From: Octopus bimaculoides
Lineage: Eukaryota
Assembly: GCF_001194135.2 (NCBI RefSeq)
Contig: NC_069003.1
Span: 21,991,317-22,037,202, forward strand
Length of the DNA: 45,886 nt
Reading direction: 5' to 3'
Shown: piece by piece, positions 1 through 26,572 of the stretch
Layout: the number at the start of each line of letters is the position of its first letter
How positions within the stretch are numbered: the stretch's first letter is position 1
Notes under the pieces: model-generated
Seen by the model: the letters and a program-made list of their open reading frames with translations, nothing else
Databases searched by the model: none
What the model was told of the DNA's origin: nothing
Program-made: the position numbers and the translations under genes

Positions 1-225
1 GGCACATAAAAGACACCATTTCGAGCGTGGCCATTTTCATGCGGGTGACACGTAAAAGCACCCACTACACTCTCTGAGTGGTTGGCGTTAGGAAGGGCAT
101 CCAGCTGTAGAAACTCTGCCAAATCAGACTGGAGCCTGGTGTTGCCATCCGGTTTCACCAGTCCTCAGTCAAATCGTCCAACCCATGCTAGCATGGAAAG
201 CGGACGTTAAACGATGATGATGATG

Positions 226-226
<1 letters not shown>
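1..226 (+). mobile_element. 3' end of an RTE-tailed SINE/LINE family ending in (GAT)n
   Basis: ggcgttaggaagggcatccagctgtagaaac...catggaaagcggacgttaaacgatgatgatg. Homologous copies at about 23950-24055, 27845-28270 (-), 28975-29070 (-), 32025-32235, 35180-35335, 36668-36815 and 40460-40800 (-). Confidence 0.8.
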
Positions 227-265
<39 letters not shown>

Positions 266-317
266 GTATGTACATGTATATATATGTATATATATGTATG
301 TATGTATATATATATAT

Positions 318-1392
318 TTTCGAGAAGGCAGCCCCCTACTACAACAATGCCCAAGCCAATAATGGCTTTAAGGATAAATTAATATATAACCCCTCTAATA
401 TTAATTGGAATAATAATAATAATAATGACAGACCTAAAAATAGATCTGGGAAAATATTTTGATTCACCCCCTGTAAAAACTAACACAGGTAAAAGATTCC
501 TGTTTCTATTAGACAAACATTTTCCAGAAAATCAGATACAGGAAAATATCTAACAGGTGCTTAGAGAAATTATTATATAGCTGTTGCCCCAATATGAAAA
601 GTATCATTACGTCAGACCGACACCAAGAGCCCAGTCTCAGGAACCTGTCCACTCGACCAGCGATATATACTCTTTTACTTGTTTCAGTCATTTGACTGTG
701 GCCATGCTGGAGCACCGCCTTTAGTCGAGCAAATTGACCCCAGGACTTATTCTTTGGAAGCCTAGTACTTATTCTATCATTCCTCTTTTGCCGAACCGCT
801 AAGTTACGGGGATGTAAACACACGGTTGTCAAGCGATGTTGGGGGAGACAAACACAGACACACACACACACATATATACATATATATATATATATATACG
901 ACGGACTTCTTTCAGTTTCCATCTACCAAATCCACTCACAAGGCTTTGGTGGGCCCGAGGCTATAGTAGAAGACACTTGCCCAAGGTGCCATGCAGTAGA
1001 AATGAACCCGGAACCATGTGGTTCGTAAGCAAGTTACTTACCACACAGCCACTCCTGCGCCTATGAATAAATCTGTCATATATGAGATAGAAGTTACAGC
1101 AATGCTAGATAATAATACAACCAATAAGAAGAGCTATATTGGACTATGTGAATCACATGTCTTTCTTCTGACACAGGGACAGAAGTAAAGCTACTAAGCT
1201 GGCTAACCATGTATAGGGTTTGAAATCGAACACCACACCACATACGATAAGTGGAAAATAGTCAAAAAATCCACACCATATGATAAAAAAAATGTAAGCC
1301 ATGCATAGCTGAAAGAACTCAGATTCCTTTTAGATTTAAGAACTGTTGAATTGTAGATCCTAAATTTTCAGCAGTTGCAAGCGTATGCTTAC
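318..1392 (+). mobile_element. Decayed Penelope-like element (RT-EN linker and GIY-YIG), interrupted by a SINE
   Basis: FEKAAPYYNNA...KNRSGKIF*FTP...KTNTGKRFLFLLDKHFP at 318-530. VIYEIEVT...SYIGLCE...KLANHV*...WKIVKKSTPY...CKPCIAE at 1075-1320. Confidence 0.78.
670..1041 (-). mobile_element. tRNA-derived SINE (octopod OK/OR-like) with internal (TA)n/(CA)n
   Basis: Minus strand begins ggcgcaggagtggctgtgtggtaag...ggttc (A/B box-like). Copies at about 5508-5815, 22320-22635, 27220-27535 and 31080-31470 (all -), and 35990-36170, 36880-37020 and 38640-38830 (+). Confidence 0.82.
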
Positions 1393-1762
1393 GTTCCTGT
1401 TGACAAATTGGAAAGCGCCTCCCTGAATAGAATTGACTAACTGTACCATAGGCTCTAAGCCACTGTCTTTACAGCCTTATAATTTATAGTCTAAGGGAAA
1501 TAACTCTTATTCGCCAGTTTGCTTCTTTCGTTTCTCTTTTACATTTTCTGTTTTTTTTTAACTTTCCACCTTTTCTATATACTTCATTCTCACCTTTTTT
1601 CTCTTCCCATCTTTAGTTCGTTATGCCATGTGGGCATAATGATTATTGTGTTGGGACACCAGACATGTTATAAAACACTATTTGGCATGTTCTCAGCACA
1701 TGAAGCTAATTGTAGTGCATAAAAACATATATTGTTTATTAAATAATACACACACACCCACC

Positions 1763-1798
<36 letters not shown>

Positions 1799-2023
1799 NN
1801 NNNNNNNNNNNNNNCATACATATATGTACATACATACATCTATATGTATTCATACGTGCATATATGGGTACAGGACATTAAGAAAAACGTTAAACACAAT
1901 GAGAAATGAAAACAGAAAACGAACTTTTTCGAACAACGAAAAAAACAAACAAACAGAGAAACGAGACATGCAACATAAAGAGTATATCCCTTCGTCAGTT
2001 GTCCCTGTATGTATGCATATTTA

Positions 2024-2258
2024 TATTGTGTTGGTGCATAATTATTGTGGCTTTTTTATTTCAATATATTTTATTCGACAAAGCAATAACAATATTTAAC
2101 AAAAACATCTTTAAATGACAGTCTGACCGTCTGCCAAGCAAATGGGAAGCAGTAATTGAAGTAGATGGTGAATATGCTCTGGAATAATCATTTAAAGATG
2201 TTTTTGTTGAATAAAGTTTATTGAAAAAAAGCCGCAATAATTATGCACCAACCCAATA
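2024..2258. mobile_element. Non-autonomous mariner/Tc1 derivative (MITE)
   Basis: Long TIRs tattgtgttggtgcataattattgtggc / gccgcaataattatgcaccaacccaata in TA context. Interior encodes LPSKWEAVIEVDGEY, a mariner C-terminal motif. Confidence 0.82.
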
Positions 2259-2379
2259 TATATATATACATACACACACACATCTGGCTTTAGAAATTCC
2301 AACCATGGCTAACACATCTTTTTCCAACACGCAGGAATCTAGGACTACATAATCCAATGTTTTATCTTTTTAAAGAATG

Positions 2380-4330
2380 GGTGCAGGTATGACTGTGTGG
2401 TTAAAAAGTTTGCTCTATAGGATGCACTGGGTACATCCCATAGAGTTACTACCTACACCTTTTCTACATATTGAGCAGGGCCATCTACCTGAATGGGTTT
2501 GTGTTTTATCTACCTTCCTACTTATTAGGACTTTGGTTTTTGCTAGGTTGACTGTAAGGTCCTTCAATTCTAGACTTTGCTTCCAGACCTAAAACTTCTC
2601 TAGTTCTGGTAGTGACTCAGCTGTAAGAGTGAGCTCAACAGCATACAGGAGCTCTCAGGGGCAGCTTGTCTTGAATTCCTCTGTTACTGCCTGGAGGAGT
2701 ATGGTAAACAAGAGGCCAAGGACTGATCTTTGGTGAACTACTTCTATCTGGAATTTTTCACTATACTCGTTGCCAACCTTCACTTTACTGACAGCATTGT
2801 GTACATGGCTTGTACAGCTCTCACCAACCACTCATCTATCCCTAATTTTGACATTGACCACCAGATAAGGGATCAGGGGACCTTATCAAAGGCTTTCTCC
2901 AGGTCAACAAAAGCCAAGTACAGAGGTTTATATTTGGCTAGGAATTTCTCCTGCAGCTGTCTTACCAGAAATATAGCATCAGTAGTGCTTCTTCTTAGCA
3001 CAAACCCAAACAGCATCTCATCTAAACTAACTCTCCTGAATTAGTTGGGTTATGATCCTCACCTTGACTGTAATCACCTGATCCAACAATTTGATAGCTC
3101 TGTAATTATTCTTATCTCATGCACCATTTTACTTTTGTAGCAGTTGACTATGGTGTTACTACACCGGTCACTGGGTATGACTCCTTCATGTATCAACTGA
3201 TTGACTAAATGGGTGACTAGACTGCCAGATATTTTAAACATCTCAGCAATGATTCATGATAAGCAGGAAGCTTTCCCTGTCTTCATACCCTTAATTGCTT
3301 TATCTACGAAGGTACCGTCAATTCGAACAACTGGTCCCTCTGTTGGGTTGACATTTGGCAGACTCTCTTTCTCCTATTCATTCAGCAACCTTTCATAGTC
3401 ATGCCTCCAAGCTTCTCTCTTGGCAGAATCATTATATGCAAGTGAGTTATCATCCACACACACACATTTCAAAATACTTCAAGTCTCTGGTCCTTGGCAA
3501 ATTTTTCTTATCTGCCTCAGTAAACCTGTCTCCTGGCTATCTTATACCGTTCCCTGCTACCACCACATTCCCAGTCCTTCCATGCCTGTTTCTTTTCCCC
3601 AATAGCCCTGTCAACTACATTTTCCCACCACCATGTTACCTTAGGTTGAGAGGGTACTTTGCACCAGCCATAGATCTGGTCAGTAGCCCTTAACAGGTTG
3701 TCCCATCCTCCACATTAAGTAATGCTATATCTTCCTCTTTTTCGTCAAAAGCTTCAAGTAATGTCTCTAAATCTGTCCATTCAGAGGATCCTTAAGCTTC
3801 CAGATCCCTCTTTTCCATGCTGGTCATCCATTTAGCCCTGATCCTGAAGTCATTAACTACTAACCTATGTTGTGGGGTGCATTCTTCACCTGGGAAAGTT
3901 TTGGCATTTATAAACAGCCATCTTTCTCGTTTCCTGACGAGAATGCAGTCAATCTGATTAGTGTACCGACCAGACTGGTAAGTGAACAGGTGACTGGCAG
4001 GTTTCCTGAAGTTAGTATTATAAATCATAAGATCATTTGTCTCACAGGACTCCAGCTGCCTGGCTCCCTCCTCATTGCAAGAACCAAATCTATTACCACC
4101 ATGTACACCATGGAAGCTCCCTGAATGTTGTCCAACATGCTCGTTGAAGTCGCCAGCCACAAAGAGAAGGTTCCTTTCATTTGTTGACGATATAGTCTGC
4201 AAGAGGGTGTCATAAAATCTGTTTTCCTGTTCATCAGGTAGCCCTGACTGAGGGGCATAGGCCGAGATAATGGTTGTAAATCCATGTTGCAGCACTAGTC
4301 TAAGCTTAAGTACTCTATCACAGACTGATT
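2380..4330 (-). mobile_element. Decayed RTE-clade LINE (APE endonuclease and downstream ORF)
   Basis: IISAYAPQ...VAGDFNEHVG...NTNFRKPASHLFTYQSG...QIDCILVR (3792-4295), continuing leftward with stops and frameshifts. Confidence 0.82.
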
Positions 4331-5599
4331 ACTTCGATTACCTTATCAGCCCATTTCTTTGCAAGGAGTATACCCACACCCCCAACCCCATCAGTGTTCC
4401 CTACCCAGAAAATCTTATACCTATGTTCTTTGCCTGTGAGGACCTAGAGGAACCTCCTCTCCACCTTACTTCATGGATGCAGCACAGAATCTATACGTTT
4501 CTGCTCAAGCATCTCAACAATTTCACCAGACCTACCTTTCAATGTTCCAGCATTAAGTGTGGAAGGTGTGCGTGGCGAGACCCTGGGGATGGGGGACAGC
4601 AGCATCATGCATCTGAAAAGAAATCTCGCATGAGCGTTTGGCAGATCTCATAAACATACAAATAGGCTTCAACCTGCACACACTTCACCATCATTATTAT
4701 ATTCACTGCATAATCATGATGTTCAACAGGAGAAAGACACTAGATAGGAATGGACTGGGAAGGGAGGGGGAAGTGTTCCGTATAGTAGACAGTTAGAGGT
4801 GCTCAGGAGAAAGACACCCAGTAGAGGTCAGAAGAGAAAGACTTCCAATATAGGTGGCAGGGATGATGTGAGGGCACACCACGAATGGCAAAGAACTGTG
4901 GCTACCCTATTCCCCAACAAAAGCTGATGTGGCATAGCCGCTGACAAAGCAAGCTACTAATTAACAATCAACATGGAAAAAGCAAGTGGTTAACAAAACA
5001 GAGAGAGAGAGAGATAGGGAGGGAGGGAGGGAGAGCGGTGAAATCTTTGAGAATTAGTGCTAGTTGAAGAAACAATGGAGCATTTNNNNNNNNNNNNNNN
5101 NNNNNNNNNNNNNNNNNNNNNNNNNNNNNNNNNNNNNNNNNNNNNNNNNNNNNNNNNNNNNNNNNNNNNNNNNNNNNNNNNNNNNNNNNNNNNNNNNNNN
5201 NNNNNNNNNNNNNNNNNNNNNNNNNNNNNNNNNNNNNNNNNNNNNNNNNNNNNNNNNNNNNNNNNNNNNNNNNNNNNNNNNNNNNNNNNNNNNNNNNNNN
5301 NNNNNNNNNNNNNNNNNNNNNNNNNNNNNNNNNNNNNNNNNNNNNNNNNNNNNNNNNNNNNNNNNNNNNNNNNNNNNNNNNNNNNNNNNNNNNNNNNNNN
5401 NNNNNNNNNNNNNNNNNNNNNNNNNNNNNNNNNNNNNNNNNNNNNNNNNNNNNNNNNNNNNNNNNNNNNNNNNNNNNNNNNNNNNNNNNNNNNNNNNNNN
5501 NNNNNNNAGTACTTATTCTATCGGTCTCTTTTGCCAAATCGCTAAGTTATGGGGACGTAAACACACCAGCATCGGTTGTCAAGCGATGTTGGGGGACAA

Positions 5600-5640
<41 letters not shown>

Positions 5641-6740
5641 CATATACATATATATGACGAGCTTCTTTCAGTTTCCATCTACCAAATCCACTCACAAGGC
5701 TTTGGTCGGCCCAAGGCTATAGTAGAAGACACTTGCCCAAGGTGCCACGCAGTGGAACTGAACCCAGAACCATGTGGTTCGTAAGCAAGCTACTTACCAC
5801 ACAGCCACTCCTACGATATTTATAATGAGTGTTAAAGTGAGAGAGAATTGAATTGAACATGGGGTTTTCTAAGTTTACTATAACATACAGCATGGAATAA
5901 ACAATGGGTCGTGCCTTTGTGTTCCCTCACCACCACCACCACTATTGCTCGACAACTGATGCTGATATGTTTGTCTCCATAACTTTATGGTTTGGCAAAA
6001 GTGACCAATAGAATAAGTCCTGGAGTCAATCTCATCAGCTAAAAAGCCCTTTATGGCCACAGTCAATTAACTGAAACAGGTAAATGAATAAAAGAATATA
6101 ATTCCTAATAATATTTAATTATAAAAATACAACGGGAATTTTTTTTAAACCTTGAATGTCTATGAAGGTCTACCCAAGGAAGATAGGAATCAAAAGGGGT
6201 TCATAGGCAAAATTGGTTGAGAGACACTGCTCTAAAGGAACACTGAAAGCCTTGATTTTACACCATTTTGCTCAGGACTTTGATGAGCATTGCATCAACT
6301 CAAAAGTATTTTTCCTACTAAGTATGAGCTATTGTAATGGTAAGAGAAAATCAAATTTTACAGGAAAATGTCATAGAAACAAGAGAAACAAAATATTTGA
6401 GAGAAACTTTTATTGTTTTTATGAATTTTATTTTAGTACATACACCAAGACTTTTCTACTTTTTGCAGAAAACATTTTCATTTTTTTTTTTTTTTAAAGA
6501 AAAATTAAGTAGATCATGGAAAACCATGCATAAACAAATAGTCAAGGAAAACAAGTATTGTGCGAGAATGACCTCGTATTAATGAAACAAAAAATTCTTA
6601 TTCAACAACAAATTAATTGGGAATTAATTTACCAGTATGCTTGTGCAAAATCATCATTATTATTATTGGTTTTCAAAGCGGAAGCTATGAGTTTTTGGCC
6701 AATTGTCACTGAAAATTTTGTTATATCTATTAATATTTTT

Positions 6741-7841
6741 CAATATTTCTGTAGCCAAGCCGACTAGGTTCTTGCAGAGCTAGTCGGTTAGGCGAAATTT
6801 CCCCCATTTAGGGGCAAAATTTTCATTAGAACTTTTCAATTTTACACTTTTCACATATCTTATTTTTGAAAAAATGTTGTTGAAGAGAGCAGCGAGCTGT
6901 TCTCTTCTCTCTGCTTCACTCCCCGAAAAAAAGAACGACATGTCAAGTCGCATTTCACCCCGCCCAGCTGACGCCATAAAAGGCAAACTTTTGAATGCCG
7001 AGGAACGTTCTGCCACCTGCAGCATTCCTGATTCCAGTCTGTTTAACAGACTTTCTCATATACACTTCCCAGCTCTCACCTCCACCATTGCTCCTACACT
7101 GGAGAAGGAGGAAGAAAAAAACAACACCAAGACCACAACCAGTTGCCATTGTAACGGTTTCGCTTCCGCAGCTAAACAGAGCTCGGAAGAAACCAAAGTT
7201 ACAATGGCAGAAATAAACAATGCTAAGGAGTTGTTAAGAAAAGATGGCAATAATGTCTTTCTTAACACTCCACAAGCATTGATACAAGCAACAAACAGAA
7301 GAACAATAATATACAAGGTGTTCAACACAAGATACCACAAAATGGAGAGTGCTACTCCACAGAGGTTGGAGATAGCTCTAAAACCCATATGGGGCCAGAA
7401 AAGTTTTGTAAACAAAGGGAAGCGCTTTGGAACAGTGGAAGTGCGCTTCCCAACGGAAGAGGATGCCATCCGGCACTCCACAACACCATTGAAGGCGGAC
7501 GATCTATTACTCGTGCCGACATTGAAGAGACTGCCGCTATTCTAGAAGTGCATAGAATGAAAGAGAAAAACTTGTCGGGTATGGGAATGCAGCTCCTTGT
7601 TCAAATTGAACAAAATAGCAGAAATGCCATACCTGACGCAATAAACTTGCCGGATGGCAGTAGGATACACTTTGCTGTAGAGGGCCGCAGACCAAAAGCC
7701 TCCACACCACCATCTCCACCCATCACCAAACCAACACCAAGAACCTCCCACCAAAGAAGAAAATAACAGAGCCAGCAACAACAACAACAGAAATTGCAAA
7801 AGAATTTTCGCCAGACCCTACGGACATTCCCTTCCCAGATC
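6741..7841 (+). mobile_element. Tx1/L1-clade LINE copy 1, 5' UTR and ORF1 (internally deleted), left of the EVE
   Basis: ORF1-like translation (6874-7545) homologous to copies 2 and 3. 5' UTR hairpin gccgactag...ctagtcggt. Deletions at about 7522 and 7696, the second removing the zinc knuckle. Confidence 0.8.
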
Positions 7842-7974
7842 CTACTAAATTTAATTTAATTACAAGAGAGGAGGAGTCCGGACTCCTCAGAGACAGCGAT
7901 GCCGCTGGAGGAAGAGGTGCCCCCTCTAGTTTATACGTTTCTGCAGCGCTTGTGTGTATAGAAAATAAATTGTA

Positions 7975-8036
7975 TGACGTCATCTATCACGTGATATACA
8001 GCATATAACAGGAAGTATACGAGCAGCAGCTCAGTT
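7975..8036 (+). promoter_or_regulatory. Predicted Pol II promoter for VP
   Basis: TGACGTCA (CRE) 7975-7982, CACGTG (E-box) 7988-7993, TATAA 8004-8008, CAGGAAGT (ETS-like) 8009-8016, and TCAGTT initiator 8031-8036 whose A lies 29 nt from the TATA start. Confidence 0.65.
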
Positions 8037-8042
8037 CCTGTT

Positions 8043-9287
8043 ATGCCGCCGAGGAAGAAAGATCGTGAAGCAGACAAAACTATAGAATTTCACGTACCGG
8101 GATATAAATTCTTAGGACCTGGAACTGATCTGAAATACAGACGACATCAGAAACCAGTAAACAAATTAGATGCCATAGCAAAAACACATGACCTCGCTTA
8201 CGAAAATCCTAATAAGGACACCTGGGAATCAGACAAGGAATTCATCAGAAACGCTGTTAAAGAAGGACCCACTGGCATCCTCACAGCTGGAGCTATATCT
8301 CTTAAACATTATAGCGGACTTGATAAGAAGTTCAGAGGCGCCAACAGCAATTCTAATAGCGTTACTCATAGCGATTACGATCTTAAAAATATGGCTGAGG
8401 AATCGACAAGCAACGAAGGCGCAACAGCAGCATCAGCAGGATGGGCTGGAAGTCAAGTTCAAACGGCATCAATCCCTGAAGCCACTGGAAACTTCAGTGG
8501 AGACGTCTGCTTCAAAAGAAGATTCAGACACGGAGTTAAAACAACTCAAATGAACAACGCTAAAGTCAAGTTCACGAAATTTCAGGGCAACGAAGCTGGC
8601 TACCACAACGTGGGACACAGCGCATACGGAGAGGTTACTTCGGAGGACTACATCATCCCTTACTGGTTGACATCATGGGTAAACCCGATACAATTCGAAC
8701 AAACTATGAAAACGGCTACATCCTACAGGATAAAGTCCGTAGGTTTCGAAATATCCAACGTCATGGGTGGCGAATGGACATCTAGAAACAACGAAGAAGT
8801 ATTCTTATACACAGAAGTATCAGACATCAATTACGATCACCAACAACCTATCAAAAAAAAAGACGGAACACATTCTATCAGCAGCGGAAACATGGTAACA
8901 GCCAACAGAACACTGATAAACAAAGTGCTTTACACTTCAGAAGACCCGCCCCAACTCGTTTACATCAACGTACCAGCAGCATGCAGACCCAATGGGACGG
9001 CAGCTCAACTCTACTTCACCTTCGACATAACATACTTCCTGGAGGTGGAATGCTACTTCGAAGCTATGCACCACCCACAAAAAGTAGCAACCATATGCCC
9101 TGAAGTAGCACGACAGTCCACGTACAAAAACTTCAACTACGACCTCTTCTTAGTCACGCCCCCTGGAAGGCACTTGAATCATATCACACCCAAAGGGAAA
9201 AGGCACGGCAGAACAACATTCATCGACGAGGACTCGGCCGGAAACAAAGTACTTCAACATCTGTCAGGCCACTTCGTTAATCGCTAA
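8043..9287 (+). CDS. Parvovirus-like capsid VP1 (414 aa) with N-terminal PLA2 domain; probable VP2 start at Met117 (8391)
   Basis: Ca-binding loop VPGYKFLGPG, catalytic KLDAIAKTHDLAY and downstream SDKEF Asp. Basic N-terminus PPRKK. Ala/Gly/Ser-rich stretch after a strong-context ATG (aaaaatATGg). IPYWLTSWVNPIQFEQTMKTATSYRIKSVGFEISNV resembles the conserved parvoviral capsid core. No stops. Confidence 0.88.
   Translation: MPPRKKDREADKTIEFHVPGYKFLGPGTDLKYRRHQKPVNKLDAIAKTHDLAYENPNKDTWESDKEFIRNAVKEGPTGILTAGAISLKHYSGLDKKFRGANSNSNSVTHSDYDLKNMAEESTSNEGATAASAGWAGSQVQTASIPEATGNFSGDVCFKRRFRHGVKTTQMNNAKVKFTKFQGNEAGYHNVGHSAYGEVTSEDYIIPYWLTSWVNPIQFEQTMKTATSYRIKSVGFEISNVMGGEWTSRNNEEVFLYTEVSDINYDHQQPIKKKDGTHSISSGNMVTANRTLINKVLYTSEDPPQLVYINVPAACRPNGTAAQLYFTFDITYFLEVECYFEAMHHPQKVATICPEVARQSTYKNFNYDLFLVTPPGRHLNHITPKGKRHGRTTFIDEDSAGNKVLQHLSGHFVNR
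8188..8553 (+). CDS. Overprinted +1-frame ORF (121 aa) with one predicted transmembrane helix, X/ARF1/MAAP/SAT-like
   Basis: Stop-free for 121 codons in the +1 frame over the PLA2 C-terminal half and the VP1u/VP2 boundary. Hydrophobic APTAILIALLIAITILKIWL followed by basic RNR and a polar tail. Confidence 0.5.
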   Translation: MTSLTKILIRTPGNQTRNSSETLLKKDPLASSQLELYLLNIIADLIRSSEAPTAILIALLIAITILKIWLRNRQATKAQQQHQQDGLEVKFKRHQSLKPLETSVETSASKEDSDTELKQLK

Positions 9288-9314
9288 TACCAGCGACAGC
9301 GTTTACTAAACACT

Positions 9315-9360
9315 GGGCGGGAAAAAACTATATATATACAACTACGAAAACACGATCACA
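9315..9360 (+). promoter_or_regulatory. Predicted Pol II promoter for NS
   Basis: GGGCGG GC box 9315-9320, TATATATATA 9329-9338, and TCA initiator-like at 9356-9358 (29 nt from the TATA start); ATG at 9378. Confidence 0.6.
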
Positions 9361-9377
9361 CCACACAGCCGCCAGCG

Positions 9378-10181
9378 ATGGAGCCTTCAACATCCAACAC
9401 CGTGTACGCTACTAAAGAATCATTCGACGCCTTCATCAAAAATTCGAATTTGCTGCCGTATACTTGGGTATACAGATGGAATGAGGATAATGAATTCACG
9501 TGGGACGAATCTCCTACAATCGGCAAGGCGCTCGAGACGATAAGATACACACAGTCACCACAAGCGCAATACTTTATGAACATAATATCAAGACACCCTT
9601 CCATTGTAATTTACCACAAAGAGGCGCAAAGTAAGATTAAACACTGCTACGACAGAAAACATTTTCACGTCATTTCGTTCCACAAGGAACATCCGTCCAA
9701 CCAACACAGCTTTCAAATGCTAAAAAACATACTAAAGAACAATATAGCGAGACCATACACAATGGCCGCCATGAAAGTGTTCACACCGTACGGCTTCTGC
9801 AAATACCTCACACAGGACGATTCCTTAAGATGGGTTGTCTGTGCAAACAACATCAACTCCGAACAGACAGCTCTACTGAAAAAACTAACTGATAAAGAAT
9901 ATCACGAAAGCGATAATGATTTATCGGACACCGAATCGGTTAACAAAACAAAGACTGTCAGAGGTGACAAGTACGACTTTATTAAAAAGATGATGCGCCA
10001 ATGCAACAGCACAGACTTGGGAGACATCATCCAGTACTGCAACAACTCACCAAAAATATCTCACAAAACGACATGGCAGAATATATACAGAAATACAGCA
10101 AATATACAAACCATAATATCAGCAGCAGCTACTGAAACAAATATAGAAACGCTGAGCACTTACATTCCCTTCCACGGATAG
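9378..10181 (+). CDS. NS1/Rep-like protein, N-terminal HUH endonuclease domain; truncated before the SF3 helicase, last codons LINE-derived
   Basis: IVIYH...KHFHVISFH (HUH, H95/H97) and FCKYLTQ (candidate catalytic Tyr143). Good start context gccagcgATGg. No Walker A motif. The ORF runs into Tx1 sequence at 10162 and stops at TAG 10179-10181. Confidence 0.75.
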   Translation: MEPSTSNTVYATKESFDAFIKNSNLLPYTWVYRWNEDNEFTWDESPTIGKALETIRYTQSPQAQYFMNIISRHPSIVIYHKEAQSKIKHCYDRKHFHVISFHKEHPSNQHSFQMLKNILKNNIARPYTMAAMKVFTPYGFCKYLTQDDSLRWVVCANNINSEQTALLKKLTDKEYHESDNDLSDTESVNKTKTVRGDKYDFIKKMMRQCNSTDLGDIIQYCNNSPKISHKTTWQNIYRNTANIQTIISAAATETNIETLSTYIPFHG

Positions 10182-10484
10182 TGAGAAAGGGGAGTGGCAC
10201 ACTGTACCACCAAAGAAAAAAACGGAGAAGGAAGACAAAAGAAACAAGTGACAAAGAGGGGAGGCGTGAAAAAGGTGAGCTTCCCAACATCATCAACAAC
10301 ACCTTCTCCACCGCAAACACCAAAAATGAACATCTATTAAACTTTTTAGAAAACAGTACAAATACAAATACCACAAACTTCATTATACCCTTATACAACG
10401 CACCCCCAGCACACATACTCACACTATAGATAACCGAAGAAAACTACAATAAAATAAAAGAAAAGTTTCCGAATGATGTTGGCT
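10162..10484 (+). mobile_element. Tx1 copy 1 ORF1 C-terminal part, right of the EVE
   Basis: Matches 14338-14642 (DSEKGEWHTVPPKKKRRRK...KIKEKFPNDVG), then breaks off into the 5' UTR of copy 2. Confidence 0.85.
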
Positions 10485-13190
10485 TTGAACATTTCTATTT
10501 TCACATTTTAGCGCATAATATTTTTGCAAAATGTCGTTGAAGAGAGCATCGAACTGTTCTCTTCTCCCTGCTTCACTCCCCGACAAAAAGAACGATGTGT
10601 CAAGTCACTTTCTCATATACACTTCCTAGCTCTCACCTCCACCATTGCTCCTACACTGGAGAAGGAGGAAGAAACAAAATAACACCAAGACCACAACCAG
10701 TTGCCATTGAAATGGTTTCGCTTCCGCAGCTAAACAGAGCTCGGAAGAAATCAAAGTTACAATGGCAGAAATAAACAATGCTAAGGAGTTGTTAAGAAAA
10801 GATGGCAATAATGTCTTTCTTAACACTCCACAAGCATTGATACAAGCAACGAACAGAAGAACAATAATATACAAGGTGTTCAACACAAGATACCACAAGA
10901 TGGAGAGTGCTACCCTACAGAGATTGGAGATAGCTCTAAAGCCCATATAGGGCCAGAAAAGTTTTGTAACTAAAGGGAAGTGCTTTGGAACAGTGGAAGT
11001 GCACTTCCCAACAGAAGAGGATGCCATCCGGCACTCCACAACACCACTGAAGGTGGCGATCTATTACTCGTGCCGACATACCTTGGTCGGCGCATGACAA
11101 AAATAAAACTAGATCAAGTGCCGCCAGAACTGAACATCTCCTGGCTAGTGGCAGCTGTGCTCTTTGACATTGAAGAGACTGCCACTATTNNNNNNNNNNN
11201 NNNNNNNNNNNNNNNNNNNNNNNNNNNNNNNNNNNNNNNNNNNNNNNNNNNNNNNNNNNNNNNNNNNNNNNNNNNNNNNNNNNNNNNNNNNNNNNNNNNN
11301 NNNNNNNNNNNNNNNNNNNNNNNNNNNNNNNNNNNNNNNNNNNNNNNNNNNNNNNNNNNNNNNNNNNNNNNNNNNNNNNNNNNNNNNNNNNNNNNNNNNN
11401 NNNNNNNNNNNNNNNNNNNNNNNNNNNNNNNNNNNNNNNNNNNNNNNNNNNNNNNNNNNNNNNNNNNNNNNNNNNNNNNNNNNNNNNNNNNNNNNNNNNN
11501 NNNNNNNNNNNNNNNNNNNNNNNNNNNNNNNNNNNNNNNNNNNNNNNNNNNNNNNNNNNNNNNNNNNNNNNNNNNNNNNNNNNNNNNNNNNNNNNNNNNN
11601 NNNNNNNNNNNNNNNNNNNNNNNNNNNNNNNNNNNNNNNNNNNNNNNNNNNNNNNNNNNNNNNNNNNNNNNNNNNNNNNNNNNNNNNNNNNNNNNNNNNN
11701 NNNNNNNNNNNNNNNNNNNNNNNNNNNNNNNNNNNNNNNNNNNNNNNNNNNNNNNNNNNNNNNNNNNNNNNNNNNAACATCTATTAAACTTTTTAGAAAA
11801 CAGTACAAATACAAATATCTCAAACTTCATTATACCCTTATACAACGCACCCCCAGCACACATACTCACACTAAAAATAACCGAAGAAAACTACAATAAA
11901 ATAAAAGAAAAGTTTCCGAAAGATGTTGGATCGCTACGGAGAAGTTTCTCCCAAAGCCTTTATCAGAATTTAGTGGAAACACCCACACGGAAACATAGGG
12001 GAGCCACCCCACCAGAAAACAATAAGTAGAGCTTTTTCTCCTCTAATACTTTCCTATTTTTTAAAAAGAAACATGGTAATTCTCAGACTCGGAAGTATAA
12101 ACGTGAGAGGCCTCGGGTCGCCTTGGAAGCAAGGTCACCTGTTGAACGACCTGGTCTTACAGTATAGATGTAGTAGCCATTAGCGAAACCAGGCTCTCTG
12201 ACCCGCAGGAACTCGCAGCCCTTTTCGGTGGATACGAGATTTTTCTATCTCTGTGTCGGCCGGGAGCGGGCGGTGGGGGTACTGTGGTGCTATTTCGGAA
12301 AGGCCTGGATTTGAAAATAAAGGCAGTCTTCCTGGATCCAGAAGATAAGTTGGTGGTCCTGGATGTTGATAGTAGTGACGGCGCTGCCTACGCTCCGACA
12401 GGAGCAGGGCAGTCGGATTATTTCAAACGTCTGGAGGTTTTCCTGGGTACTTCTCGCACTTTAGTGCTAGTTGGGGATTGGAACGCTGTCTNNNNNNNNN
12501 NACGTCTGGAGGTTTTCCTGGGTACTTCTCGCACTTTAGTGCTAGTTGGGGATTGGAACGCTGTCTTAGACGAACGTATCGATAGGGTGGGTGCGGGAGC
12601 ATCTGATAGGAGAGTGGGGTGCAAGAGCCTCGCCAACCTGCTCAAACGCTTTCAGCTGTCCGACAGGTATCGACTAGACAACCCGAATGTGCCAATGTGG
12701 ACTTGGACTAATCGCATTGGGTCGTCTAGATTGTACTTAGATAGAGTTTTCTGTAGGCCAGCAGATAAGGATAGCATAGGGTGTCCACAATTCAACTACA
12801 CAGACCACAAATTCGTGATCTGTACGGTCGACTTAGATAGGCTCCATAGACAAGGTCCCGGTTACTGGAAGCTAAACATGTCGTTAACGGAGTGCAAAGC
12901 CTACAGAGACCGGATTAGTTTATTAGTTAAGAGGGCATTAACCGGGGTAATCATCAATAACAACTGGTGGTTCACCCTCAAGCGGGCAATTAGAGCAGAA
13001 TCGATTAGGTGTAGTAAGGCTTTAGCTGTAGAACGTAAGAAAACAGAGTGGGATTTAGTTAACAAACTAGACGAGGCTCTTAGGACAGGCATCAGAACCG
13101 ATGTGCTGGCAGCCAGGTTGGCCCTTGACCAACACTTTGACGCCAAACACGAAGGCTGCATTGTCAGAGCTAAGGCATGTTCGGTAAGCA
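10485..13190 (+). mobile_element. Tx1/L1-clade LINE copy 2: ORF1 (gap inside) and ORF2 APE endonuclease, truncated before RT
   Basis: ORF1 stop at 12027-12029. ORF2 ATG at 12073 (MVILRLGSINVRGL). APE motifs ETR, AAYAP, VGDWNAVLD, WTW, YLDRVF, TDHKFV, then GPGYWKLN typical of L1/Tx1 ORF2. No RT motifs follow. Confidence 0.85.
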
Positions 13191-13227
13191 GCTCGTCTCT
13201 TTAACAGAGCTGCAATCCTGGATCAAA

Positions 13228-13410
13228 CGTAGACCAGCACACATACTCACACTAAAGATAAGCAAAGAAAATTACAATAAAATAAAAGACTGCCACTATT
13301 CTGGAGGTGCATAGAATGAAAGAGAAAAACTGGTCGGGTATGGGAATGCAGCTCCTTGTTCAAATTGAACCAGGTATCATAAATGCCATACCCAACGCAA
13401 TAAACTTGCC
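13228..13410 (+). mobile_element. Mosaic of rejoined Tx1 ORF1 fragments
   Basis: An ORF1 C-terminal piece (ccagcacacatactcacactaaa) is joined to a more 5' piece (gactgccactattctggagg...gcaataaacttgcc), i.e. out of native order. Confidence 0.75.
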
Positions 13411-14827
13411 TGTTTTAATTTTTTATATATTTGTGTAGTCAAGCCAACTAGGTTCTGGAGCTAGTCGGTTAGGCGAAATTTTCGTTTGAACATTTCCATC
13501 TTCACATTTTAGCGCATAATATTTTTGCAAAATGTCGTTGAAGAGAGCAGCGAGCTGTTCTCTTCTCTCTGCTTCACTCCCCGACAAAAAGAACGACATG
13601 TCAAGTCGCATTTCACCCCGCCCAGCTAACACCATAAAAGGCAAAGTTTTGAATGCCGAGGAACGTTCTGCCACGTGCAGTGTTCCTGATTCCAGTCTGT
13701 TTAACAGACTTTCTCATATACACTTCCCAGCTCTCACCTCCACCATTTTCCTACACCGGAGAAGGAGGAAGAAAAAAACAATAATATACAAGGTGTTCAA
13801 CACAAGATACCACAAGATGGTTGGAGATAGCTCTAAAGCCCATATAGGGCCAGAAAAGTTTTGTAACTAAAGGGAAGCGCTTTGGAACAGTGGAAGTGCA
13901 CTNNNNNNNNNNAATAAAACTAGATCAAGTGCCGCCAGAACTGAACATCTCCTGGCTAGTGGCAGCTGTGCTCTTTGACATTGAAGAGACTGCCACTATT
14001 CTGGAGGTGCATAGAATGAAAGAGAAAAACTGGTCGGGTATGGGAATGCATCTCCTTGTTCAAACTGAACAAGATAGCATGCCATACCTGACGCAATAAA
14101 CTTGCCGGATGGCAGTAGGATACACGTTGCTGTAGAGGGCCGCAGACCAAAGTGCTACCTCTGCAGCAGCGAACAACACCTAAAGAAACACTGCCCCATC
14201 TACAAGCAAAGATTGGAGGCACACAAAAGAAGAAAATTCCTGCTGCAACAACAACAACAGCCAAAAGCATCCACACCACCATCTCCACCCATCACCAAAC
14301 CAACAACAGCAACAGAATTTTCGCCAGACCATACAGACATTCCCTTCCCAGATCAGCTCGGATTGTGCGAGCATGGATAGTGAGAAAGGGGAGTGGCACA
14401 CTGTACCACCAAAGAAAAAACGGAGAAGGAAGACAAAAGAAACAAGTGACAAAGAGGGGAGGCGCAAAAAAGGTGAGCTTCCCAACATCATCAACAACAC
14501 CTTCTCCACCGCAAACACCAAATACAAATATCTCAAATTTCATTATACCCTTATGCAACGCACCCCCAGCACACATACTCACACTAAAAATAACCGAAGA
14601 AAACTACAATAAAATAAAAGAAAAGTTTCCGAATGATGTTGGATCGCTACGGAGAAGTTTCTCCCAAAGCCTTTATCAGAATTTAGTGGAAACACCCACA
14701 CGGAAACATAGGGGAGCCACCCCACCAGAAAACAGTAAGTAGAGCTTTTTCTCCTCTAATACTTTCCTATTTTTTAAAAAGAAACATGGTAATTCTCAGA
14801 CTCGGAAGTATAAATGTGAGAGGCCTC
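13411..14827 (+). mobile_element. Tx1 copy 3: 5' UTR, ORF1 with CCHC zinc knuckle, first codons of ORF2 only
   Basis: CYLCSSEQHLKKHC (C-X2-C-X4-H-X4-C) at 14153-14194. ORF2 ATG at 14786; homology ends at gagaggcctc (14827). Confidence 0.85.
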
Positions 14828-21978: not shown

Positions 21979-24900
21979 CTGAAGAAAAAGACACAAAACA
22001 TGTATCAACCTAAATGCATTAACATGCGTACAAATGAATGCATGCATTCTAATACATACGCTAGTGCAGAATTTCTGAAACTGGTCCCGGAGAACACCAG
22101 GGCCTGTGAAAATATTACAGGGTTCTGCCAGATAAAATGTTCTTTAAATAGAATTTAATAAAAATTGCATGGCACCTTGTTCAAGTGTGTTCTACAACAG
22201 CGCTAGACCAACCAAAGTTTTGTGAATGGATTTATAAATGGAAACTGAAAGAAGCCCATGTGTGTGAACATGTATGTCTTGCCAAGCTAATTCTTTTATT
22301 TTTTTTACTTATTTTACTCATTAGACTGCCACCATGCTGGAGCAACATCTTGAATTTTAGTAAAATGAATCAACCCCAAAACTTATTTATAAAGCCTGGT
22401 ACTTATTCTATCAGTCTCTTTGTTGAACTGCAAAGTTATAAGGACATAAACACACCAACAGACACACACATATATATACACAATTATCTTTCAGTTTCTG
22501 TATAATATATCCACTCACAAGGCTTTTGTTGGCCCAAAAGCTATAACAGAAGACACTCACCCAAGGTGACACACAGTGGGACTGAACCTGTAACCATGTG
22601 GTTGGGAAGCAAATTTCTTACCACACAGCCACACCTGAACGAACATCATACAGAATAGAGTAAATTATACCTTTCCATAGAAAACTCTGCCCCATTGTAG
22701 TTTTGTTGGACGCATAAAAAGCATGGAAAAGGTAGACGTTAAGATGACAGTATGATTTTTATACAAACAGTTCCTAAAGCAACTAGGTTTCAAAGTTTTA
22801 TTAAAATTAGAATGTTGGAAGTTATCCTTAGCATGTAGGCATAGATTCTGCAACTAAAGTTTAGAAGTTATTCTAGTCTGTTGCTAAACAGAAATACACT
22901 AATTCTGTTCTATTTACTATGAGTTTCATATTTTAAATTGAATTTAGCTGAAAATTTTAGAATTTAAATCTTAATATTTTGTGTTGAAATTATATTTGTT
23001 TTAAAGAATTTAAAATTATCTCTATATAAAATTATATATGTAAACATTGGTTGATTTCTCCCGTCATGTTTACATTGCAGAGAGAGACAACATAAGAGGT
23101 ACATGATGAGTGCACATACTAGGCTTGGTGACAGGAAATGTGGCAAGAGAGGGAGTAAATAACAATAGTTATGGGAATAGTGATACAAATGAGAATTTTT
23201 TGTTTTATTTTAAGGCAAATATTTTTTCTTTTGAAAATTAATATTCATTCATTATCATTCAAGCACAAAGAATTTTGACAACAGTCAAATTATAATTATT
23301 GGTTTCAAATTTTAGTACAATGCCTGTTACTTCGGAGGAGGTGGTAAGTCGATTATACTGACCCAGTTCTCAACTGGTACTTATTTTATTGACCAGAATG
23401 GACGAAAGGCAAAGTTGACCTGGGCACAATCTGAACTCAGAACATGAAATGTCGCAAACCATTTTCTCTTTTGCATCTTTCATTATTTTCTCCAAGACTT
23501 TTTCCGGAGGTTTCTCCTTTCTTTGTTCCTTCCCATTCCTTGTCATACTTAACATCAATCTTTTTGCCTTTCCTCTTCCTCCTTCACTATTTTCTGTTTC
23601 TTTATCATTCACCTCATATTGCACCTTTCATCCAATTCTGCCACCTCGCCCCCTTATATGATTATTACCGTATTTCCTGACATTACTCACGGGGAACAAG
23701 TATACTTTTAAAGTTACCTGTCATATGATGAGTAGCAATATTTACAATACAAAATTAAATGAAAACGTTTGCTTGACATAATTACTTCCCTTAGATATTG
23801 TAACCTGTACTTTTTTCTTCAGTAATTTCACTACACACGTGCAAGACAGTCACACACAAACACTTGTACATACATCAACACACAAACTAAGACAGACCAC
23901 TTTCTGTGATATGGTCAATTATTGGGAATTGACTATTCTAATAATAATTGCCAGATCAGATTGGAGCCTGGTACAGCCTCCTGGTTTGCCAGTCCTCAGT
24001 CAAACCTTCCAACCCATGCCAGCATGGAAAGCAAACATTAAACAATGATGATGACATTCAATTGCAAATTAAAAGCTGTGCTAGTGTTGTAAACATTATT
24101 GACCATACATACTCTATGTATTTTGCTTGTTTGCTGCGGTATAGTGCTTTGGGGATGACACCATTCATAACAGTGGATGTTAAAACCCCTTTTTCTATGA
24201 CTTTCAGGTGTTTTAACACCCAGTACTATGAAGGAGGTGTCTCCAAAGTGCTATCCTGTAATGAACAAACAAGTAAAACGCATGCAATTTATGCAGTTGG
24301 TTTTACCTATGACATATGTGGGAAATTTTGTCTGTGGGTGTGTATGTGGAGTTGTTAGCTAACTCCCCCTACATCGTTTTATCGATTTTGATAAAACTTG
24401 ACACGTGAGTAGAACTCATGTCTGGAAACCTCATGGCATACTCAGATTGTACTCAGACTTTACAATTTGAGTATTCATAACTGATTGGGTATTCCTAAAA
24501 ACAAGATCCTGTGTAAGACAGTTTGGTATTCTGTGTAAATGCACAAAAACTGTTTTAAGGGTTACATACTTTGTATTGCTGTCATTAGGTTAGTGAAAAA
24601 ATTATGAGAATGGAACCAAGGGATAAGCCCCGCTTTCCCGGGAATAACCAAGTACATCAGCTAGTGTATATATATATACATATATATAGTAATAATATTA
24701 GGGAACAAAAACTTATTCCAACCTTACAGGCAAAAATCGGTATAATATTACACCGGGTTTCGTAATATATAATATATATGTATATAACTAATTTAGAGAC
24801 GAACCACCACTCTACAACTCAGTCAACTAAGAACCCATCCAAAACCAATCTGTGAGGCATATACTATATCAATATTTATCTAAGATTTTAATCTCAAATT

Positions 24901-26532
24901 TTAATAATATATAATATATCATATAAAGAAACATTCATCATAAAAATATTAATTTAAAAATCAAATAAATTATAAATAGGACAGCAAAAATTAATACAAT
25001 AATATAATGTGTGAAAGTATGAATGTATAAAAGTCAACAAGGTTAAATCATTATGGAAGTAAATAATAGTAAAAAAATGTGTTAGTGTATAAAGTTAATA
25101 AAAGACGTAAGTCAATATTGTTTAGAAAATTAAAATTAGAAAACATGACTTATCTGCCGGCGAGTTACTGTAGATTAAACCAAAATGAGTATACTATAGA
25201 ATTTATACTAAAAGGTCAAGTGATAAATATGGCGTCTATTACCCAGGGGTAAATGCGTATTATAATAACGAAAATATCGAAAGAGAAAATCTACCTAAAA
25301 TAGAAAGTTTATTGAGGATTAAAAATACTAAAATTCTTAAAACTCAGATTTACGCAGAATAATAACTATACCACATACGAAGATTATATATTACGTAAAT
25401 AATGCTATGAAACATTGTAAAAGACTGCTCATATTATCGTTGAATACTTTATAGTCAAAGGTAGTTATATGTTCTGATTTTGTATAATATTGTGATGATT
25501 AAAGTGTATTCTAAAGCTAATTTGATGTATTTAATGCTACTGATCATAACTATAAGTTGGTACCTTAATCTGGGTTTAAATAAATAAATTAGTTATCTAA
25601 ACTTATTATATAAGTAATTTATGTCTGCATTTAACATGATGTTCATCGTGGGAGTTAATCAATTTTTTATTGGCTAATAATATCTCTTTAAATTTGTTAG
25701 TAAGTACATAATAAGCAGAATTGCAAACTATTTCCCATTTTAACTCGTATTCTATTCTTTTTGATTTACGTTCCCAAATGTATTTACTAAGGCCCATAGA
25801 GTTCATTAAATTTCTGTTCTTAAAAGAATTCATATGTTGAGCCACCCTGGATTTAATTTTATTGGAAGTTGATCCAATGTAAGTAGTATTTATGTTATCA
25901 TTATTACTACAGTTATTATCCTTCAAAATCACTATACATTTATATACTATGTCCTCAACATTACATCTATTATTAAATTTACATTTAGTCTTATTGCTAC
26001 AATTACAATCAATTGTATTTTGGACTCCAATGGAGGTATTACTTAATTTATTATTGTAAAACTTATTTAATTTAAATTTATTAAAGGATGAAATGATGTT
26101 GCCAACATTATTAGTGGTAGAGTAACCAACTCCATATTTATTGCTAGAATTCGACCTGAAGAGTGACTGATTTTGGGAGTAAAATCATTTCCCCATTCTA
26201 ATGAACTTGGATAGAATTTGCTTATGATTTTATATAGTCCTATTTCAGTCATGAAACGCATGTAGTCTATGAACTAGCACTGACTTTTATACATTTATAC
26301 TTTCACACATTATATTATTGTATTAATTTTTACTGTCCTATTCATAATTTATTCGATTTTTTAATTAATATTTTTATGATGAATGTTTCTTTATATGATA
26401 TATTATATATATTATTAAAATTTTAGATTAAAATCTTAGATAAATATTGATATGGTATATGCCTCACAGCATGGTTTTGGATGGGTTCTTAGTTGACCAA
26501 GTTGTAGAGTGGTGGTTCATCTCTAAATTAGT

Positions 26533-26572
<40 letters not shown>

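Follow-up and report, generated by a model that had tools for sequence, protein, structure and literature searches.

The segment at positions 7842 to 10161 of the window, by which we mean the whole 45,886-nucleotide stretch of DNA that was analyzed, is a fragment of a parvovirus-like genome integrated into a host repeat. It spans 2320 nt on the forward strand, roughly half the length of its 4.4–4.5 kb full-length relatives, and is the sole parvo-like segment of the window. The element is very probably an endogenous viral element (EVE) that entered the chromosome at a break within a LINE-like host repeat, through non-homologous or microhomology-mediated end joining, and that is dead with respect to replication. 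Its features are collected in Table 1. The parvoviral derivation put forward in the original prediction is borne out by the phospholipase A2 (PLA2) domain of the insert itself, by the capsid fold of its relatives, which matches only parvovirus capsids, and by the NS1 proteins of those relatives, which carry a Parvo_NS1 helicase.

Table 1. Features of the insert and of the host DNA around it
Feature	Position	Strand	Basis or remark
Left flank, host repeat copy 1 (multi-copy, LINE-like)	6730..7841	+	Self-BLAST; alignment A4
Host 12-mer, copy one	7824..7835	+	6 nt left of the left junction
Upstream noncoding region of the element	7842..8042	+	BLASTN to L006; alignment A6
VP (capsid) gene, 414-aa open frame	8043..9287	+	No stops, no frameshifts
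Phospholipase A2 (VP1u) domain, VP residues 15–69	8085..8249	+	Pfam PF08398
VP–NS spacer, 90 nt, with TATA-like run	9288..9377	+	Alignment A8
NS1-like gene, N-terminal half only, 267-aa frame	9378..10181	+	One 3′ truncation, at the integration junction
HUH motif HFHVI, NS residues 95–99	9660..9674	+	20-sequence alignment A7
Tyr143, candidate catalytic tyrosine (RCR motif III)	9804..9806	+	Invariant, 20 sequences
Host 12-mer, copy two, at the right junction	10162..10173	+	Alignments and occurrence count
Right flank, rest of host repeat copy 1	10174..10482	+	Alignment A5
Uninterrupted paralogous repeat copy 3, empty site	13415..14827	+	Self-BLAST; alignments A4/A5

Integration site

The bounds of the insert were set by alignments A4 and A5 against the uninterrupted repeat copy at 13415–14827. 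Similarity to the host repeat stops at 7841 and restarts at 10173 (self-BLAST and the same alignments), in exact agreement with the bounds 7842–10161 that had been predicted. The repeat has further copies at 10484–12114 and 13415–14827. To the left of the insert, the segment 6730–7696 matches 13415–14151 at 79–85% and 10484–11079 at 84–96%, while to the right 10173–10482 matches 14372–14642 at 84.5% and 11776–11929 at 97% (self-BLAST). Repeat copy 2 is followed by an open reading frame for an APE-type endonuclease (12284–13204; PF03372, E=6.9e-9).

In repeat copy 3, the two flanks of the insert adjoin one another. In addition, the 12-mer ACATTCCCTTCC occurs three times in the window, at 7824, 10162, and 14337, against a chance expectation of 0. 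The adjacency of the flanks in this paralogous empty site, together with the duplication of the 12-nt host motif at the junctions, shows that the insert truly integrated into host DNA and did not arise as a chimera during assembly. The viral sequence is thus contiguous with host DNA on both sides and has an identifiable pre-integration site, as is expected of an EVE, with the site at 13415–14827 being a paralogue rather than the orthologous allele. The earlier claim of an endogenous element running without a gap into host repeat on either side accordingly stands. The first 3–5 nt of the 12-mer at 10162 can also be read as the final viral codons, constituting a microhomology, and the codon aligned at this junction encodes an isoleucine that is kept in the relatives. 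About 24 nt that follow the 12-mer at 14337–14348 are missing from the right side of copy 1, a small host deletion.

The sequence from 5508 to 11189 is free of N, and the nearest N gap lies >2.3 kb to the left and >1 kb to the right of the insert. The surrounding assembly contains six N gaps and unmerged overlaps. That exogenous-virus reads were wrongly fused to the host repeat during assembly is highly improbable. Such a chimera would be in keeping with a short-read-like scaffold that has six gaps and, beside them, unmerged 100% overlaps (12427–12491 = 12502–12566; 11102–11189 = 13913–14000), and with the lack of stops in either frame. However, a single host repeat borders the insert at both ends, at sites that lie next to each other in the uninterrupted copy of that repeat, and at the junctions 12 nt are duplicated and a little host sequence has been lost. 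The element is, moreover, half a genome and rearranged, having a single internal deletion and a truncation that falls exactly at a junction, and relatives of it demonstrably reside in the chromosomes of Octopus vulgaris and Acanthosepion pharaonis. We also rejected LINE-mediated retro-insertion of a viral mRNA, as there is no poly(A) and the truncation is 3′ and not 5′.

The VP gene and capsid

The 414-aa VP frame exceeds the Pfam gathering cut-off (23.9 bits) for Phospholip_A2_4 (PF08398), scoring 41.9 bits with E=1.3e-10. It aligns with the VP1u regions of AAV and goose parvovirus, and both the YxGxG loop and the HD dyad are conserved; a phmmer search of the PDB returned parvoviral VP1 N termini only. 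The window copy therefore displays a PLA2 in the VP1 unique region, a trait of Parvovirinae and Densovirinae.

Relative to the 606–621-aa proteins of its relatives, VP carries a single in-frame internal deletion of ∼190 codons. The deletion is unique to the window copy, being found in none of the seven relatives that span the region. It removes about a third of VP, including much of the jelly-roll core; the missing part corresponds to ∼6 of the 15 β-strands predicted in a full-length relative.

The capsid fold was assessed with an AF2 model of the full-length relative P0001. In the PDB, the 50 best Foldseek matches of this model are without exception parvovirus capsids (best E=3.8e-8, with 171 matches at E≤1e-3), and in BFVD nearly every top match is a Parvoviridae capsid (best E=3e-14). 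The model is of low confidence (mean pLDDT 49.8; TM 0.22–0.41), and the match rests on its better-predicted core. From this model, full-length members of the lineage are predicted to have a parvoviral jelly-roll capsid. The jelly roll anticipated in the original prediction is thus recovered by Foldseek in a full-length relative, whereas the window copy is missing around a third of the protein.

The NS1-like gene

The NS copy in the window ends before the SF3 helicase, and its last few codons and stop are host sequence. Its frame shares 42–76% identity with proteins in which a Parvo_NS1 helicase follows. The NS proteins of the relatives are 517–565+ aa long and match Parvo_NS1 (PF01057), with E=4.8e-17 for L007, 2.7e-14 for L008, and 2.1e-11 for L001; the L007 helicase also matches AAV Rep40/68 at E of about 3e-8 (Rep40, E=2.9e-8). 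The SF3 helicase of NS1 serves as a taxonomic marker across Parvoviridae. Judged by these sequence matches, the lineage qualifies on that marker, which the window copy has lost.

In Parvoviridae, the rolling-circle HUH nuclease at the NS1 N terminus is marked by motif II (HuHuuu) and by the tyrosine of motif III. The N-terminal half that remains contains a candidate HUH motif, in which H95 and H97 are nearly invariant across the 20 sequences of alignment A7 and lie on a predicted strand of a low-confidence model (pLDDT 44.9). The candidate catalytic tyrosine sits 46 residues past this motif. Searches of Pfam and the PDB with the 267-aa frame, both as a single sequence and as a 7-sequence profile, returned nothing relevant, and Foldseek with the unusably poor AF2 model of the NS frame (pLDDT 44.9) gave no match, with E≥0.37. 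A profile HMM of the NS N-terminal domain, searched against 1.84 billion representatives, recovered a closed family of 62 proteins, mostly short fragments, with no bridge to known nucleases. One match to the NS profile, P0083, is a 6660-aa cadherin-like repeat protein and was set aside as spurious.

The "intact capsid and nuclease ORFs" of the original prediction are therefore correct insofar as the 414-aa and 267-aa frames have neither stops nor frameshifts, but VP lacks ∼190 codons and NS consists of its N-terminal half, with no helicase. An uninterrupted ORF is not an intact gene.

Gene order and noncoding regions

Wherever a locus has both genes, they share a strand, with VP upstream of NS. 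Such loci comprise the window, L001–L003, L007, L008, L009–L011, L013, and L014, and likewise L004, L005, and L006. In the Parvoviridae layouts recognized by the ICTV, NS precedes VP on a single strand or the two genes occupy opposite strands; PMC13426907 describes these same layouts. Neither is matched by the window or its relatives, in which VP comes first, on the same strand as NS and 37–158 nt from it (spacer range in relatives from the ORF coordinates of L001, L007, and L008). A head-to-tail concatemer as the source of the VP–NS order was rejected because a spacer of 37–158 nt is too short to contain two genome ends. Our search of the literature for a VP-first parvovirus layout, a cephalopod parvovirus, or the accessions of the sequencing runs that contain relatives yielded nothing beyond the 2016 survey of Francois et al. 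(PMC5013282). The position of VP upstream of NS, the most unusual feature of the element, was absent from the original prediction.

The VP and NS ORFs share one frame of the insert, which has 4 stops in 2320 nt versus 34–60 in the other five. In the upstream noncoding region, positions 7894–7931 are conserved with the O. vulgaris copy L006 (84% over 38 nt; BLASTN), and a GGTGCC...TA-rich block aligns with the TATAA block of the relatives (alignment A6). The predicted DNA fold of this region (z=−3.7) shows several small hairpins, none of them terminal. Genomes of Parvoviridae are linear ssDNA of 4–6 kb with hairpins at their termini. We found no inverted terminal repeats (ITRs) and no large or terminal hairpins in the insert, nor any ITRs, terminal hairpins, or circular end overlap in the 4.4–4.5 kb relatives; assemblies often lack termini. 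Rfam and tRNA scans of the window gave no matches; a scan for bacterial promoters and terminators, irrelevant for a eukaryotic element, gave hits at chance level.

Age and fate of the insert

There are 302 single-nucleotide changes that could make a stop in the two frames, and the probability that no stop has arisen is 0.05 at 3% divergence and lower when indels are counted. The open frames imply a young insertion (∼2–3% neutral divergence or less) or, less likely, selection. Comparison of the window copy with its nearest relatives gives a dN/dS of 0.06 for NS and 0.24 for the N-terminal part of VP, which indicates divergence as working genes.

It is quite unlikely that the host has domesticated the insert, with purifying selection preserving the PLA2-bearing VP remnant, the NS N-terminal domain, or both, for instance in an antiviral or regulatory role. 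The two open frames, 2 kb in total, would fit such a role, as would the fact that the only large deletion is in frame and the narrow limit of ∼2–3% divergence or less that neutral decay permits. Yet the collections searched hold no orthologous or near-identical copy, the nearest having ∼75% nucleotide identity, and the exact proteins of the window are absent from protein records. Furthermore, the NS frame runs a few codons into host repeat, the insert lies within a repeat array rather than a gene-like setting, and the low dN/dS is accounted for by divergence before integration.

We instead favor end joining of a viral fragment. A chromosomal break would have opened within the LINE-like host repeat, and a fragment made up of the upstream noncoding region, VP, the short spacer, and the 5′ half of NS1 would have been joined there by a non-homologous or microhomology-mediated route. 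Both frames would then be open through the youth of the insertion and not through host use. As the element has no SF3 helicase, no terminal hairpins, and no 3′ region, and its VP is missing about a third, it can neither replicate nor be packaged.

Relatives and lineage

Our searches recovered 43 proteins of the VP family and 62 of the NS family. Among their sources only O. vulgaris and A. pharaonis are named, the others being several sequencing runs, which include ERR14857108, ERR3431203, ERR12921338/40/41, SRR8281665/75/78, SRR29271462, and SRR11869384-94. The window has dispersed repeats in common with one O. vulgaris locus, and in view of this and of the named sources the host is probably a cephalopod, as had been proposed, and one of octopod type. 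The relatives consist of a full VP followed by a full NS1 matching Pfam Parvo_NS1, with both genes complete in L007 and L008. Many diverged copies are present per species or run, two of them lie head to tail on one contig (L014), and the copy nearest to that in the window, ∼75% identical at the nucleotide level, belongs to another locus. IMG/VR contains no relative of NS, and no named virus is among the sequence matches, which upholds the proposed divergence of the lineage. On these comparisons, the source would be a divergent, cephalopod-associated, and apparently undescribed branch of parvovirus-like viruses.

The many diverged copies per species or run, the head-to-tail pair, the target-site-like duplication, and the copies with both genes complete (L007, L008) might also suggest a mobile element of parvoviral origin that multiplies within the genomes of cephalopods through insertion driven by its HUH nuclease and not through infection. 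We regard this as quite unlikely. The copies have no defined ends in common, as that in the window stops inside NS and its upstream match extends over only 38 nt; no terminal repeats were found; and the host deletion at the junction fits end joining. A capsid gene with PLA2 in every copy, in turn, points to a function in an extracellular phase. Returning to a viral source, we tentatively entertain, at somewhat less than even likelihood, the broader view that cephalopods, at minimum octopods and cuttlefish, harbor a deep-branching, undescribed, VP-first parvovirus-like lineage that may still infect them, and of which the complete copies (L001, L007, and L008) would reflect recent or current activity and not fossils.

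Comparison with known parvoviruses

The insert resembles the sequences related to parvoviruses that Francois et al. 2016 (PMC5013282) surveyed and the IHHNV-derived EVE of Penaeus monodon (PMC8982415) in being a rearranged, truncated fragment of a small ssDNA virus in host repeat DNA, with NS and VP frames. It differs from animal parvovirus EVEs in that both frames are open and in its VP-then-NS order. The O. bimaculoides helicase fragment in PMC5013282 is only 26% identical to the helicase of the present lineage and so belongs to another lineage. The recently described "megaparvovirus" group with its beetle EVEs (PMC13426907) sets a precedent, being a deep-branching lineage represented by metagenomic contigs and EVEs and non-canonical in organization, but its members place NS1 before VP and carry PLA2 as a cassette of its own, in contrast to the mere two genes, PLA2 within VP, and VP-first order described here. 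Densovirinae, the parvoviruses of invertebrates with monosense or ambisense genomes, share invertebrate hosts, including molluscs, PLA2 in VP, and varied genome layouts (PMC13426907). Ambisense densoviruses have VP and NS on opposite strands, whereas here both are on the same strand with VP first, and no densovirus protein is among the sequence matches.

The best sequence matches with solved structures come from Dependoparvovirus (AAV and goose parvovirus), for VP1u PLA2 at E of about 2e-4 and for the SF3 helicase of the relatives (Rep40/68) at E of about 3e-8, in a PDB so rich in AAV that "closest" is a weak term. As in that genus, VP has an N-terminal PLA2 and then a predicted jelly roll, and NS1 a candidate nuclease and then a helicase. 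Unlike that genus, with which capsid identity is 10–15%, the present lineage has a reversed gene order, an NS N-terminal domain without detectable sequence similarity, and no ITRs that we could see.

Parvovirus-derived insertions are common in animal genomes, and the insert would be ordinary if taken alone. It points, however, to a coherent family, represented by dozens of divergent copies across cephalopod assemblies and sequencing runs, that combines a parvoviral PLA2, capsid fold, and SF3 helicase with genes in reversed order and an N-terminal NS domain that lacks detectable sequence relatives. To our knowledge, almost no DNA viruses of cephalopods have been described, and the taxonomy of Parvoviridae was enlarged as recently as 2025. 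If NS1 phylogeny confirms the placement, a cephalopod-associated branch would be added to Parvoviridae, the range of genome layouts in the family would widen, and the insertions would provide dated markers for the history of cephalopods and their viruses. The family also accounts for "hypothetical PLA2-like" proteins in the gene sets of O. vulgaris and A. pharaonis.

Integration of the element into a host repeat

Window 7842-10161 is a genuine endogenous viral element (EVE), and its flanks belong to a single host repeat of which the window holds three copies. When copy 1, which carries the insert, is aligned with copy 3, host similarity stops at 7841 and restarts at 10173, so that the bounds proposed in the original prediction prove exact. 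A host 12-mer beside the left junction occurs again at the right junction; copy 3 contains it once, and there is no further occurrence in the window (0 expected by chance). To the right of the insert, ~24 nt of copy 3 are absent from copy 1, and the right-hand 12-mer shows a microhomology, its initial 3-5 nt being equally readable as the final codons of the virus. The two ends fall on adjacent host positions, a short host motif is duplicated and a little host DNA is lost, the pattern characteristic of a chromosomal break sealed by end joining. Mis-assembly would not give this combination of adjacent host ends, 12-mer duplication and small deletion, and we regard a chimeric assembly as very improbable.

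Describing the host repeat as LINE-like is reasonable, since the ORF after copy 2 encodes an endonuclease domain of the APE type (PF03372); APE-endonuclease ORFs are found at two places in the window. The three copies, all 5′ parts in the same orientation, lie almost end to end, an unusual arrangement for a LINE. LINEs are normally 5′-truncated and dispersed. Two pairs of identical stretches near N gaps appear to be scaffolding artefacts, or overlaps left unmerged, within the repeat array. How many copies the array has, and what the 586-N gap of copy 2 contains, is therefore uncertain; a second insert could lie in that gap.

Features of the window, with positions in nucleotides
Feature	Position	Strand	Remarks
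VP ORF	8043-9287	+	414 aa, open frame
NS ORF	9378-10181	+	267 aa, open frame
Palindrome GGAGTCCGGACTCC	7871-7888		perfect, 14 nt
Host repeat array	6730-14827		three copies
Host repeat copy 1	6730-10482		interrupted by insert
Host repeat copy 2	10484-12114		N gap 11190-11775 covers relevant site
Host repeat copy 3	13415-14827		uninterrupted
12-mer ACATTCCCTTCC, left	7824-7835		6 nt left of left junction
12-mer ACATTCCCTTCC, right	10162-10173		at right junction
12-mer ACATTCCCTTCC, copy 3	14337-14348		single occurrence
APE-endonuclease ORF	12284-13204	+	
APE-endonuclease ORF	3792-4295	-	
Identical stretches	12427-12491 = 12502-12566		100%, across 10-N gap
Identical stretches	11102-11189 = 13913-14000		100%, beside N gaps
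Inverted repeat pair	24765-25036 / 26281-26555		272 nt, 94.5% identical, about 1.2 kb apart
28-nt satellite	37496-38262		about 28 copies, 92% identity
Inverted satellite copies	38267-38346		about 3, directly after main array

Coding content and defects of the insert

The capsid (VP) and replication (NS) ORFs share one frame of the insert, with 4 stops in 2320 nt compared with 34-60 in the other five frames, and the window is free of N runs from 5508 to 11189. ORF calls, Pfam and this check for gaps bear out the predicted pair of uninterrupted ORFs, one PLA2/capsid and one with an HUH motif, running without a gap into the flanks. Residues 15-69 of the VP ORF match Pfam Phospholip_A2_4 (E=1.3e-10, above the gathering score). 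The only solved structures that it matches are VP1 N-termini, from AAVs and goose parvovirus; its calcium-loop YxGxG and HD dyad align with theirs. The NS ORF contains the motif HFHVI and has no match in Pfam or the PDB.

The further claim that these ORFs are intact does not hold when defects are counted relative to full-length relatives. The VP gene has no stops or frameshifts and a single in-frame internal deletion of ~190 codons, which is seen in none of the seven relatives spanning that part and would take out roughly 6 of the 15 strands predicted in a relative's model. The one break in the NS gene is the loss of its 3′ part where the insert meets host DNA, which leaves ~262 of 517-565 codons; the helicase is absent, and the frame enters host DNA for a few codons before reaching a stop. 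The insert also lacks the downstream non-coding region (0.5-0.8 kb in relatives), neither a terminal hairpin nor an inverted terminal repeat was found in it, and it amounts to about half of the 4.4-4.5 kb unit. It is a defective half-genome, not an intact virus. Within its first 50 nt lies a perfect palindrome, in a part unmatched in relatives that is either viral end sequence or filler DNA.

Relatives and parvoviral identity

Protein searches returned a family without any named virus. Just two species are named as sources, Octopus vulgaris and Acanthosepion pharaonis, in both cases for ‘hypothetical’ proteins; the other relatives were recovered from public sequencing runs and a single ENA assembly. 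The loci comprise sequencing-run contigs (L001-3, L004/5, L007, L008, L009-12 and L015-20), an O. vulgaris chromosome (L006), an A. pharaonis scaffold (L013) and an ENA contig (L014). Complete VP genes in relatives encode 606-621 aa with PLA2, and the NS genes (517-565+ aa) start 37-158 nt after VP on the same strand. In Pfam, the C-terminal half of these NS proteins matches Parvo_NS1 (E down to 4.8e-17); it also matches AAV Rep40/68 (E about 3e-8).

The parvoviral jelly roll, on which the predicted identity depended, is matched by the AlphaFold model of a full-length relative VP (P0001), itself of low overall confidence (pLDDT 49.8). In Foldseek searches with this model, the top 50 PDB matches are all parvovirus capsids (best E=3.8e-8; 171 at E<=1e-3), as are nearly all top matches in BFVD (best E=3e-14), at 10-15% sequence identity.

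The nearest relatives of the window copy, at about 75% nucleotide identity, are those in runs SRR11869384-94 (L004, L005, L015-L020). These runs contain several mutually diverged copies, most with interrupted frames, apparently the endogenous copies of a single species. Both genes are complete in L008 and in L007. L008 ends in an A-rich run (4389-4405), possibly the poly(A) tail of a transcript, and L007 starts with a GAA microsatellite (1-40), possibly host flank; the ‘intact’ contigs may therefore be transcripts or EVEs, not virion genomes. Outside the insert, eight dispersed-repeat matches, about 75% identical, connect the window with the O. vulgaris locus, whereas the A. pharaonis and L014 loci have no such match to it. 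Taken with the insert's named relatives, all of them cephalopod, this indicates with moderate confidence that the host is an octopod distinct from O. vulgaris.

A VP-first gene order

In all loci with both genes, VP and NS share a strand and VP comes first; these loci were drawn from several runs and from four genome assemblies independent of one another. Known parvovirus genomes are monosense with NS first, or ambisense. The same two layouts are given in a 2026 overview (PMC13426907). This order cannot stem from head-to-tail joining of conventional NS-VP genomes, as the spacer between VP and NS has no room for two genome ends; in L014, which does have two copies in head-to-tail tandem, the NS-to-VP interval is about 1.1 kb. 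This tandem (ENA ERZ21867824 ctg104858l, 117-10778), with a reverse-transcriptase ORF just downstream, may reflect concatemeric integration or local duplication. A TATA-like run in the VP-NS spacer of the window, L001, L004 and L008, together with a conserved GGTGCC...TATAA block upstream of VP in relatives, suggests separate promoters for VP and NS.

Our literature search found no paper on a VP-first layout or a cephalopod parvovirus. The survey of Francois et al. 2016 (PMC5013282) lists a parvovirus-related sequence from Octopus bimaculoides and reports sequences from molluscs that fall into none of the known genera; the helicase fragment that it prints shares just 26% identity with the insert's lineage.

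The putative nuclease of NS

When 20 sequences of the NS N-terminal domain are aligned, both histidines of HxH are nearly invariant and a tyrosine 46 residues after it is invariant, a pattern that fits rolling-circle motifs II and III. In a poor model of NS, the histidine pair is predicted on a strand and the tyrosine on a later helix. An HMM of the domain searched against 1.84 billion representatives found 62 family members only, plus one spurious repeat protein. The latter (P0083, 6660 aa, cadherin-like, with very regular repeats) reached E=3e-15 via 21 short stretches, a repeat-driven false positive. The profile found nothing in the PDB or Pfam, nor did Foldseek with the poor model. The domain is an orphan, without detectable sequence relatives outside the family. 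The predicted HUH ORF is thus a putative HUH nuclease at the level of motifs, backed by its position before a parvoviral helicase in relatives.

An EVE as such is of an already known kind. The source lineage, with its reversed gene order and orphan NS N-terminal domain and with both genes complete in some copies elsewhere, appears undescribed and is the part worth pursuing.

Age of the insertion

Across both frames, 302 single-nucleotide changes would create a stop. With 2% neutral divergence, both frames would stay free of stops with a probability of 0.13, and with 3% the figure drops to 0.05; it is much lower with indels at an assumed rate, so that open frames are unlikely under long neutral decay and the insertion is either young or under selection. 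Domestication, in which the host retains one or both frames under selection, would account for their remaining open despite the odds at 3%. Against it, no orthologous or near-identical copy was found in the searched collections (nearest about 75% nucleotide identity), NS ends by accident in host DNA, and the setting is a repeat array; these same points favour youth. dN/dS to the nearest copies is low (0.06 for NS, 0.24 for the N-part of VP), and reflects divergence of working genes before integration, which is silent on host function. We consider both domestication and a genome-resident mobile-element lifestyle quite improbable, and favour a young insertion as the best reading of the open frames.

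Other repeats in the window

Elsewhere the window contains a pair of inverted repeats, possibly the two ends of a DNA transposon, and a 28-nt satellite array followed directly by a few inverted copies.
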